A DNA stretch of 64,000 bases from Macrostomum lignano (Eukaryota): assembly GCA_002269645.1 (NCBI GenBank), contig NIVC01000545.1:124001-188000 (forward strand). Direction: 5' to 3'. Below, one piece after another: positions 43,884-64,000 of the stretch. Numbering within the stretch: the first letter of the stretch is position 1; the number at the start of each line of letters is the position of its first letter. The position numbers and the translations under genes were made by a program. The notes under the pieces are model-generated. The model was not told where the DNA came from. It saw only the letters and a list, made by a program, of their open reading frames with translations, and did no database searches.

Positions 43884-46800
43884 TTACTTCTTTTGCGGGG
43901 CAGAGCCTGCAATGGGGATAAAGCGGGCCAGATTGCAAGTGAAAACGAATTTGAATTCGCGCTCAGTGACAACAACCAGCACCCGCCTACCGATCAGAGT
44001 CTGCTGGGTTGTCTCGCTGACCACAATGTTTGACATGCCTTGCAGGTCTGTGAAAAATTGGAAGAGAAACATGGCGTCAAGGTTAACCAAAATTACCCCA
44101 TGCGAATAACACTTCACTCATTTGACATCCCAGACTATCCCACACCATCCCAGACTATCCCACACCACCCAGACTATCCAATACCATCCCAGACTATCCC
44201 ACACCATCCCAGACTATCCCAGACTATCCCACACCATCCCAGACTATCCCTGACTATCCCTGACTATCCCACACCATCCCTCATACTATCCCACACCATC
44301 CCTCATACTATCACACACCATCCCTCATACTATCCCACACCATCCCTGACTATCCCACACCACCCCAGGCTATCCCACACCATCCCAGGCTATCCCACAC
44401 CATCCCTGACTATCCCACACCACCCCAGGCTATCCCACACCATAGGTCCCGGCACTCACTCTCCAGCGAGGTGGTGTACACAGAATTGTGCCAGCCTCCG
44501 CCGCACTTCATCGAGGCGTCCCCGGCGCAGTCTTTGTCGCAGCTAGTCTGCAGGCCGGGCCCGTACTTGCCGAACTGCTGGCCACACCAGCACTCCTTGC
44601 CGTTCTGAAGGCCGGCGAACTTGAACTGCCGGTCCTGGCAGAGTTTCACGCACCGCTTGACGGTCATGGCGTCCGAGGTCTCGGCCATGGTGGGCAGGTC
44701 TCTGTCGGCAGAGTCCTTGAAGCAACCGAAAGCGAGCTGGTGGATGGCTGCAAAAGTTAAATGTTAATCTAATTAAATAACTTTGTTAACAAACTGTACA
44801 AGAGATTAATTCAACTTAACGAGGATTGAAATTGGTTGGTTGTTAGCTTCCATCACCACTAACTCACCATCAGACCCAACTGTAGTCCAGATGTACTCGT
44901 AAGAGATTACAGTCGTGCCTCCAATAACGGTATTTGTCGTAGTAGATGTAGTTGTCCAGCTGCTGATGGTGGTGACATCGCCCAGGAAAATCTCTGTGAC
45001 TTCGCCGGTGATTGACTCGGTGCTGCTGATGCCCTCGCTGATGATGATGGCATCTGGAGATGGGGCCAATTGGCGGAGTTGAGTCTGGTTATAGGCTTTC
45101 TAAACCAGCCCTAGCTCGTAACATCTAGAACCGGCCTCAGTTATATCTGGAACCCGCCTCAGTCATATCTGGAACCAGCCTCAGTCATATCTGGAACCCG
45201 CCTCAGTCATATCTGGAACCAGCCTCATTCACATCTGGAACCAGCCTCAGTCACATCTGGAACCAGCCTCAGTCACAGCTGGAACCAGCCTCATTCACAT
45301 CTGGAACCAGCCTCAGTCAATTCTGGAACCCGCCTCAGTCATATCTGGAACCAGCCTCAGTCACGTCACATCTGGAACCGGCCTCATTCACATCTGGAAC
45401 CAGCCTCAGTCAATTCTGGAACCCGCCTCAGTCATATCTGGAACCAGCCTTAGTCACGTCACATCTGGAACCGGCCTCAGTCACATCTGGAACCCGCCTC
45501 AGTCACACCTGGAACCAGCCTCAGTCACGTCACATCTGGAACCGGCCTCAGTCATATCTGGAACCAGCCTCATTCACATCTGGAACCAGCCTCAGTCACA
45601 TCTGGAACCAGCCTCAGTCACATCTGGAACCAGCCTCAGTCACAGCTGGAACCAGCCTCATTCACATCTGGAACCAGCCTCAGTCAATTCTGGAACCCGC
45701 CTCAGTCATATCTGGAACCAGCCTCAGTCACGTCACATCTGGAACCGGCCTCAGTCACATCTGGAACCCGCCTCAGTCACACCTGGAACCAGCCTCAGTC
45801 ACATCTGGAACCAGCCTCAGTCACATCTAGAACCAGCCTCAGTCACATCTGGAACCAGCCTCAGTCACATCTGGAACCAACCTCAGTCACATCTGGAACC
45901 AACCTCAGTCACATCTGGAACCAGCCTCATTCACATCTGGAACCGCCTCAGTCACAACTAGAATCGCCTTAGATTTCTTCGGATGTTGAAGCTGGTTCTT
46001 TGTAATACTGAATCGCCGCTCACCCTTGGTCAGCCCTGTCGAGTAGACGGTCTGCATCAGACTTCCGCCGCACTGCTGGCTGCTGTCGCCGTCGCAATTC
46101 ATGATGCCCGAGCTGGCGTCCTGAATTTGGCCGTGCTTGCCGTAGCTGTTGCCGCAGCGGCACTCGTTGCCGTTCTGCACACCGAAAAATATAAATCCGT
46201 AGCGCCTGCACAGCTTCCGACAGTTGTTGAGATTTGTCTTGACCTTTCGCACCAGGAATGGCAAGTCGCGATCGGTCGTTTTGTCCAAGAAGGTGCCGAG
46301 ACTGCTGAACTCATATGCGTGTGGGTTTTTTACTTTAGGCTGTGTTTATTGTGTTTTTTGAATTGAAAACGTAATGAATTGATGCTCAAGGGTTGCACAG
46401 GTATAACGGATGAGCCCTCTGACACACGGCTGTCGTCAGCTTGACAGGAACGTCCCCAAGAGCCCCGGCGTCTCCACTCAACCAGTTCACTCCAGGCAGT
46501 CCCTCGGTGCAGTAGATAGCAGCGCCATCCTCCCACGCACTATCCTGACACGTCAGGACGACAGAGCAGCAGTTAAATTAAGTTAAAAAAAAACTTACTG
46601 ACGGTGACGCCCGTCTCGAAGACGAGGTTGTAATGGGTGCCTCCGCACATCTGGTTGCTGTTTCCTGAACACATGGTGAAGCAAATCGTTGGGTCACCCT
46701 TGCCGTAACGGCCGTAGCTGTTGCCGCAATAGCAGGTGTTGCCCTCCTGAAGGCCGGCGTATTTGTAGCCAAGCTCGGAGCACCTGTTGAGGCACAGGTT

Positions 46801-64000: not shown

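Follow-up and report, generated by a model that had tools for sequence, protein, structure and literature searches.

A gene of Macrostomum lignano for a predicted secreted protein with 13 WSC domains, and the probable duplication footprint in its phase-1 introns

Introduction

Modules flanked on both sides by phase-1 introns (class 1-1), together with an over-representation of introns in this phase at the cleavage sites of signal peptides, are the rule for metazoan extracellular proteins (PMC8001218). Genes of this kind line up tandem, disulfide-rich and autonomously folding modules whose borders coincide with introns, and the modules are preceded by an exon for the signal peptide, whose phase-1 end comes just past the cleavage site (Patthy; PMC8001218). 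The WSC domain receives no mention in that review of class 1-1 modules (PMC8001218). In fungi, proteins composed only of WSC domains are lectins that bind beta-glucan and are enriched in the polysaccharide matrix outside the cells (PMC9252488). One of them, as far as it is described where it is cited, is WSC3 of Serendipita indica, a secreted protein with nothing but tandem WSC domains and with multivalent glucan binding (Wawra et al., 2019, cited in PMC9252488). Here, we describe Mlig028452.g3 (BOX15_Mlig028452g3), a gene for a protein with 13 tandem WSC domains (PAA81169.1, 1443 aa), which lies in a stretch of 64,000 nucleotides of contig NIVC01000545.1 from Macrostomum lignano, a free-living flatworm; this whole stretch is referred to as the window.

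Two other animal genes provide comparisons. In the hemipteran Lycorma delicatula (LOC142334050), ten tandem WSC domains are followed by a C-terminal glucanase-type domain of glycoside hydrolase family 16 (GH16), and the array aligns with the flatworm protein at ~30% identity over 82% of the query. In Lingula anatina (LFEI02000690.1, 501-11375), four WSC domains are joined to a purple-acid-phosphatase domain. With these systems as a background, we consider it likely that the window takes in the whole of one WSC gene and the 3' end of a paralog, that the product of the complete gene is a secreted, lectin-like protein of 13 WSC domains, and that its phase-1 design is the footprint of duplication. 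The gene would then be a tidy example of a known principle, namely that of a secreted multidomain gene which has grown by duplication of class 1-1 exons.

One complete gene and the end of its neighbor

The DNA of the window is eukaryotic and contains many minisatellites, and all of its 6506 overlapping bases are identical to NIVC01000545.1. When the concatenated domain exons were used in a protein search, M. lignano proteins were the top matches. The sequence of PAA81169.1 is reproduced exactly by 23 minus-strand exons which run from 58386 to 43884, the latter being the final base of the stop codon (Table 1). Altogether, Mlig028452.g3 extends over 14.5 kb and has 4332 coding nucleotides. It is an already annotated but uncharacterised gene of this free-living flatworm.

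A hidden Markov model (HMM) built from five WSC domains of the gene was run over the whole window in six frames. In the interval from 56455 to 44470 it detected 13 complete WSC domains, each on the minus strand. Beyond these, there is a partial domain at the end of the window (63999 to 63928), and the model found no WSC domains elsewhere in the window. The partial domain is the last WSC exon (WSC13) of a separate tandem paralog, Mlig032065.g1 (PAA81170.1), located on the same strand ~5 kb upstream and 57% identical to PAA81169.1. Because PAA81170.1 ends with a TAG stop codon of its own and Mlig028452.g3 has at its start (58386) an exon for a signal peptide of its own, these are two separate genes. 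The initial annotation had assigned at least 14 WSC domains, each on its own exon, to a single gene. For 13 of them this is correct, but the 14th belongs to PAA81170.1, and the concern it had voiced, that the exons might be distributed over several genes, applies to this 14th domain and not to the other 13.

Table 1. Coordinates of the exons of Mlig028452.g3 and of other features in the window.
Feature	Length	Phase	Position	Strand	Remarks
Exon 1, start codon and signal peptide MRPIVSGLLAVACLLGLIGQAAA followed by ETGAS	85 nt	ends in phase 1	58302..58386	minus	residues 1-28 exact
Exon 2, WSC1	288 nt	1-1	56188..56475	minus
Exon 3, WSC2	285 nt	1-1	55142..55426	minus
Exon 4, WSC3	285 nt	1-1	54299..54583	minus
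Exon 5, WSC4	285 nt	1-1	53587..53871	minus
Exon 6, micro-exon, first-linker residues MGSDSG	18 nt	1-1	52581..52598	minus	same size in paralog
Exon 7, micro-exon	33 nt	1-1	52457..52489	minus	same size in paralog
Exon 8, micro-exon	39 nt	1-1	52331..52369	minus	same size in paralog
Exon 9, micro-exon	27 nt	1-1	52211..52237	minus	same size in paralog
Exon 10, WSC5	285 nt	1-1	51656..51940	minus
Exon 11, WSC6	288 nt	1-1	49917..50204	minus	one extra Cys
Exon 12, WSC7	288 nt	1-1	49538..49825	minus
Exon 13, WSC8	285 nt	1-1	49030..49314	minus	donor GTGAGT (canonical, 49030)
Exon 14, acidic linker	102 nt	1-1	48834..48935	minus	canonical ttgcag acceptor
Exon 15, linker	42 nt	1-1	48690..48731	minus
Exon 16, WSC9	282 nt	1-1	47530..47811	minus
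Exon 17, WSC10	282 nt	1-1	47085..47366	minus
Exon 18, WSC11	288 nt	1-1	46599..46886	minus	modelled with AlphaFold2
Exon 19, WSC12, degenerate (six Cys, not eight)	291 nt		46024..46314	minus	acceptor AT
Exon 20, Ser/Thr-rich linker	186 nt	1-1	44868..45053	minus
Exon 21, WSC13	288 nt	1-1	44460..44747	minus	best PDB sequence match KREMEN1 WSC
Exon 22, tail	57 nt	1-1	43991..44047	minus
Exon 23, last six codons (SAPQKK) and TAA stop			43884..43906	minus
Paralog WSC13 exon, 3' part			63918..64000	minus	PAA81170.1 match
Paralog exon 22	90 nt	1-1	63722..63811	minus	PAA81170.1 match
Paralog exon 23 with TAG stop, end of upstream gene			63495..63547	minus	PAA81170.1 match
Degenerate Tc1/mariner-type transposase remnant			59531..60714	plus	in 5-kb spacer between the WSC genes; in neither gene

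Domain organization of PAA81169.1

The signal peptide of PAA81169.1 is followed by WSC1-4, a linker encoded by the four micro-exons, WSC5-8, a two-exon linker of acidic character (37% Asp+Glu), WSC9-12, a linker from one exon which is rich in Ser/Thr (40% Ser+Thr) and probably O-glycosylated, WSC13, and a hydrophilic C-terminal tail of 26 residues (two exons). The WSC domains are thereby laid out in blocks of 4+4+4+1. A Pfam search of the spliced product, as had been proposed in the initial annotation, recovered 13 WSC stretches with a total of 670.6 bits (cut-off 27.8) and nothing else. Minus-strand translation between 43 and 64 kb yields a row of Cys-rich open reading frames (ORFs), and each of the WSC-domain ORFs tested matches the Pfam WSC family (PF01822) with E values of 1e-14 to 1e-20, and single exons score 52-71 bits.

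The domains have diverged considerably from one another. Identity between them ranges from 29 to 61% (mean 43%), and 49 of the 102 alignment columns vary around an invariant Cys/Gly core, with variation in the loops. Eight conserved Cys residues are present in 12 of the 13 domains, the exception being WSC12. Values above 1.6 on the Kyte-Doolittle scale are reached by residues 1-23 only, which form the sole hydrophobic stretch of the protein; cleavage is predicted between AAA and E, with exon 1 ending five residues further on. Over the whole protein, the same plot gave no transmembrane segment and no hydrophobic C-terminus. The variable loops, the lack of a transmembrane segment and the picture of a secreted, multivalent WSC protein had all been anticipated in the initial annotation and are borne out here: with a predicted signal peptide, 13 WSC domains and flexible linkers, the sequence supports PAA81169.1 being a secreted, soluble and highly multivalent WSC protein.

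Structural information came from an AlphaFold2 model of WSC11, built on an alignment of 22 domains, which reached a predicted local distance difference test score (pLDDT) of 95.1. Foldseek matched it to the WSC domain of human KREMEN1 (TM score 0.88, root-mean-square deviation 1.3 Å), and also to a glyoxal oxidase structure from Fusarium and to the yeast Wsc1 sensor domain (TM score 0.71). The KREMEN1 WSC domain is the best sequence match among solved structures as well, in this case via WSC13. As modelled, the domain has the WSC fold.

An exon design in which all introns are in phase 1

Every WSC domain is encoded by an exon of its own, with a length of 282-291 nt, and all 13 of these exons are phase 1-1. 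The same phase is found at each of the 22 introns, whether next to a micro-exon, a linker, the tail or the signal-peptide exon, and the donors are uniformly strong (GTGAG/GTAAG). All internal exons are phase 1-1 and multiples of 3 nt, so any subset of them could be removed in frame, which agrees with the exon boundaries as they were first described. With an assumed background of 0.3, the chance of finding 22 of 22 introns in phase 1 would be ~3e-12, but this figure treats the introns as independent when the exons are mutual duplicates; being copies of one another, they make the 22 of 22 a record of duplication history and not of 22 independent events.

The gene has the hallmarks of class 1-1 modular genes listed above, from the introns at the domain borders to the signal-peptide exon, and differs from them in that all 22 introns are in phase 1, even those around four micro-exons. 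The WSC gene of Lingula is built in a related manner. There, too, phase 1 is found at the end of the signal-peptide exon and in the introns on either side of each WSC module, and linker micro-exons of phase 1-1 are present (30, 21, and 21 nt). In contrast to the flatworm gene, each WSC module of Lingula is split by an additional internal intron in phase 2. Judged from these gene structures, the layout with one domain per exon and the same phase throughout is nothing unusual, being what exon duplication commonly leaves behind in modular proteins that are secreted.

The introns have peculiarities of their own. Most of the long ones (44126-58255) each contain a separate minisatellite; the repeat units measure 20, 22, 20, 22, 28, 35, 8, and 18 nt, with as many as 90 copies, and the gene is inflated by them to its present extent. 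Intron 9 (51949-52202) consists almost entirely of ~85 copies of a trinucleotide (TAG on the plus strand; tac/cta as read on the coding strand), and its last bases are tactaac-tggcag, so that a perfect branch-point motif of the UACUAAC type stands directly before the WSC5 acceptor.

Conservation in the paralog and in a second genomic copy

The paralog Mlig032065.g1 has the same 23 exons, with all introns in phase 1 and of the GT-AG type, and the same 13 WSC domains in a 4+4+4+1 arrangement. Its micro-exons (at 5143-5598 of locus L002) measure 18/33/39/27 nt, so their lengths have been kept exactly despite a protein identity of only 57%. The paralog differs in its much shorter introns (mostly 70-190 nt, for an extent of 8.7 kb), in a long Pro/Thr repeat linker, and in a WSC12 domain with all eight Cys residues. 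A second genomic copy of the gene, Mlig028452.g1 (PAA71520.1, locus L001), shares the 13-WSC architecture, the 23 exons and their phases and is 98-99% identical, the difference being that it retains the AG acceptor of WSC12. Between the two copies, hereafter g3 and g1, exons are ~98-99% and introns ~89-95% identical.

The order of the domains is informative. Each of the 13 is most similar to the paralog domain with the same ordinal number (51-78% identity, compared with ~40% for other positions), which indicates that the whole array was in place before the gene was duplicated and that no homogenisation has followed. Within the gene, the closest pairs are four domains apart, namely WSC2-6 (57%), WSC3-7 (58%), and WSC4-8 (61%), against the mean of 43%, and WSC12 groups with WSC4 and WSC8. 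Taken with the linker that follows each block of four, these pairs fit at least one duplication of a block of four exons.

A comparison of g3 with g1 gave a ratio of nonsynonymous to synonymous substitution rates (dN/dS) of 0.12 for the whole coding sequence, of 0.087 for the WSC exons, and of 0.29 for the linker exons. The low values, in particular that of the WSC exons, imply purifying selection on every exon and the maintenance of all domains. A recognition gene that diversifies fast would leave a different signature. From its position-by-position match to the paralog, the array is taken as an old and ordered one whose domains are not interchangeable.

From these observations, the following history can be proposed. 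A single class 1-1 WSC exon would have been duplicated behind a signal-peptide exon ending in phase 1, with at least one of the duplications taking in a block of four exons. The whole gene would have been duplicated later, and then once more by polyploidy. The default product would carry all 13 domains, and the symmetry of the exons would be a historical footprint and not a device for combinatorial splicing.

Splice-site irregularities and the degenerate WSC12

Two junctions of the GenBank model of g3 are non-canonical. At the junction of exons 13 and 14, the model uses 49026/48931, and exon 14 starts after a dinucleotide other than AG. A canonical pair, GTGAGT (49030) and ttgcag (48935), is found 4 nt away and keeps the phase 1-1 arrangement. 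The g1 copy reads GIGGN-DESDY at this place, with the N (not S) that the canonical junction predicts, and the GenBank junction looks like the transcript of another copy projected onto this locus.

The second irregularity is found at WSC12, where the acceptor dinucleotide (46315-46316, minus strand) is AT in g3 and AG in g1 (19709-19711 of locus L001); all other splice sites of g1 are canonical. The AT could reflect either a splice site lost in this copy alone or one wrong base in the assembly. Located 18 nt upstream, at 46334-46333, is a cryptic AG which is in frame and would let exon 19 start at 46332. The use of this AG, in-frame skipping of the exon, or the use of out-of-frame AGs just downstream are all possible outcomes. 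The WSC8 acceptor (aaaaag, 49314) is weak but conserved. The initial annotation had marked the acceptors of two exons, H and L, as uncertain; these would fit WSC8 and WSC12 provided that its lettering starts at WSC1, and of the two only the latter departs from AG. If it is real, the loss of a splice site in one copy shows how phase symmetry buffers mutations in genes of this type.

WSC12 itself is unusual. In both genomic copies, it lacks two of the eight conserved Cys residues, the first of them through GTF in place of GC[YF] and another in the C-terminal half, which looks like the coordinated loss of one disulfide. It also has the highest nonsynonymous rate (dN) among the WSC exons.

Possible function of a 13-WSC protein

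What such a protein might do can be approached through the company its domains keep. Homologous arrays are fused to GH16 domains in planthoppers, whiteflies and mealybugs, to GH10 in octopus, and to GH71, GH30, and glyoxal oxidase in fungi, while the Lingula array is fused to the acid phosphatase domain. Joined to glucanases, xylanases and oxidases, such arrays would act as carbohydrate-binding modules. The flatworm protein has the tandem array of its hemipteran counterpart without the catalytic domain, and in this it resembles the WSC-only lectins of fungi. Glucan binding, an established property of the fungal proteins, is only putative for the flatworm protein. Secreted fungal WSC lectins also have few domains, not 13. 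By analogy with these fungal precedents and with the glycoside hydrolases that accompany WSC domains, we infer that PAA81169.1 binds glycans. Like a lectin with many binding sites, it would bind or cross-link a polysaccharide or glycoprotein by means of avidity, probably in a secretion such as mucus, gut fluid, seminal fluid, or the material of eggs or shells.

Arrays of comparable length are found outside this species. A Logan contig from SRR28326266 (6068 nt, an intronless transcript) encodes 1971 aa with 18 WSC domains and a signal-peptide-like N-terminus, and it aligns to the flatworm protein with 29% identity at 98% coverage. Very long WSC-only arrays are thus not unique to Macrostomum.

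A slowly evolving, secreted member with 13 domains and a tandem paralog is a reasonable target in the search for ligands of animal WSC arrays. Should it bind beta-glucan, a link to diatom feeding or to anti-fungal recognition would be possible. Diatoms are the diet of M. lignano in culture, and chrysolaminarin provides their glucan context.

Alternative readings

It was also proposed in the initial annotation that the symmetry of the exons may serve to diversify a lectin through splicing, and this proposal finds no support in the data compared here. Regulated or copy-specific in-frame skipping of WSC exons, linkers, or micro-exons would create a repertoire of poly-WSC lectin isoforms with varied valency and spacing. 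The phase 1-1 exons of a multiple of 3 nt, the four conserved micro-exons and the differing loops of the domains would all suit it, as would the paralog models, which vary in the micro-exons they include. However, phase 1-1 is generic for metazoan extracellular modules (PMC8001218) and is seen in Lingula too, the exons are serial and not alternative versions of one segment, the donors are uniformly strong, and the micro-exons make up only 117 of the 4332 coding nucleotides. Positional orthology with the paralog in 13 of 13 domains and purifying selection on all WSC exons (dN/dS 0.12 for the whole coding sequence) also argue for a fixed array. The gene models were compared for both genes across all members of their 90%-identity protein clusters, with transcript-based and ab initio models from two assemblies, and none of these models lacks a WSC exon. 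They differ only in two or three micro-exons and in the copy number of the Pro/Thr repeat in the paralog linker. The micro-exons are missing only from UniProt-only models, which were taken as ab initio, and not from the GenBank BOX15 models, a split which makes prediction misses the probable cause. We regard combinatorial use of the exons as very improbable; if it did occur, the lost WSC12 acceptor of this copy would be a natural example of it, giving a 12-domain variant. That same acceptor invites a different suspicion, which is that g3, as one duplicate in a neopolyploid genome, is in decay, that its mRNA is aberrant or devoid of WSC12, and that the 13-domain protein is made from the other copy only. 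The AG in g1, the two non-canonical junctions which the GenBank model requires in g3, as if a transcript had been projected from another copy, and the high dN of WSC12 are all compatible with decay. It would be surprising in such a case to find the 4.3-kb reading frame intact, the other 43 splice dinucleotides canonical, and a dN/dS of 0.12. The cryptic AG and the skipping of the exon both preserve the frame, moreover, and the AT may come from a single-base assembly error, so that we hold decay of this copy to be quite unlikely.

The remaining alternative concerns the ligand. PAA81169.1 could be a protein-binding scaffold or matrix component whose WSC domains engage in protein-protein contacts as in KREMEN1, and it is indeed the KREMEN1 WSC domain, part of a Kringle-WSC-CUB ectodomain, that comes closest among solved structures, in sequence as well as in fold. 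The joining of related arrays to polysaccharide-active enzymes in fungi, insects, molluscs and brachiopods and the glucan-binding, lectin nature of fungal WSC-only proteins would speak against it, by analogy, and we consider a scaffold role unlikely. A secreted 13-WSC lectin whose phase-1 exons record duplication is therefore the reading we prefer, and several points have to be counted against it. We know of no animal poly-WSC protein for which binding or a ligand has been described. The best structural relative, KREMEN1, is what we take to be a protein-binding receptor, and for this reason the glycan binding of PAA81169.1 is inferred, not shown. The actual product of g3 may differ from the annotation through the loss of the AG at WSC12, and the differing micro-exon content of the paralog models could reflect real skipping of micro-exons. 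Finally, the evidence for a constitutive inclusion of all exons consists of annotation models and conservation.

Two well-known systems had been named in the initial annotation as loose analogies. The exons in Dscam clusters are likewise symmetric and in frame, but there one of many alternative versions is chosen, whereas the WSC exons are serial, non-equivalent and individually conserved. A mutually exclusive cluster of the Dscam type was rejected, as all 13 exons are in series in the transcript-derived models of the gene, of its second copy and of the paralog. Schistosome micro-exon genes also come from flatworms, and the four micro-exons described here (18-39 nt) are near their size range. 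Those genes, however, are built almost wholly of micro-exons. A gene of the schistosome type, understood as one with most of its coding sequence in symmetric micro-exons of up to 36 nt, was likewise rejected, given the small share of micro-exons noted above.

Expression and the WSC family of M. lignano

In adult worms of an aneuploid subline, g1 belongs to the ten genes with the strongest down-regulation (PMC12896417, Table S5). This is the sole match in the supplements of PMC5816591, PMC5977470, PMC12732829, PMC5946080, and PMC12896417, which hold no tissue record for the genes, and none of the identifiers Mlig028452, Mlig032065, Mlig000239, and Mlig005686 is found in the main texts of the literature searched.

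The WSC family is strongly expanded in M. lignano, and several of its members are prostate or seminal-fluid candidates. Many of the prostate-limited seminal-fluid candidates of this species are short WSC proteins (PMC5977470, Table S1; PMC6953679; PMC4490696). These proteins (RNA815_80.4, Mlig-pro46, and others) share the species, the domain family and secretion with PAA81169.1 but are encoded by transcripts of ~0.7-1.4 kb, and RNA815_80.4 has two WSC domains. Identity of RNA815_80.4 with the gene described here was considered and dismissed: the supplement sequence of 969 nt is AT-rich, encodes a different protein, and is unrelated at the DNA level. Genes for seminal-fluid proteins are usually expected to evolve rapidly, and the slow evolution of the 13-WSC gene (dN/dS 0.12) is unlike this expectation.

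Other features of the window

The transposase remnant in the spacer between the two WSC genes was recognised by weak Pfam matches to HTH_Tnp_Tc3_2 and DDE_3 on two separate ORFs. Further away, two neighboring genes were noted. One is represented by an exon of a Kelch-repeat protein (25189-25872, plus strand), and the other by an apparently intronless ORF of 443 aa for a rhodopsin-family G protein-coupled receptor (35825-37156, minus strand).

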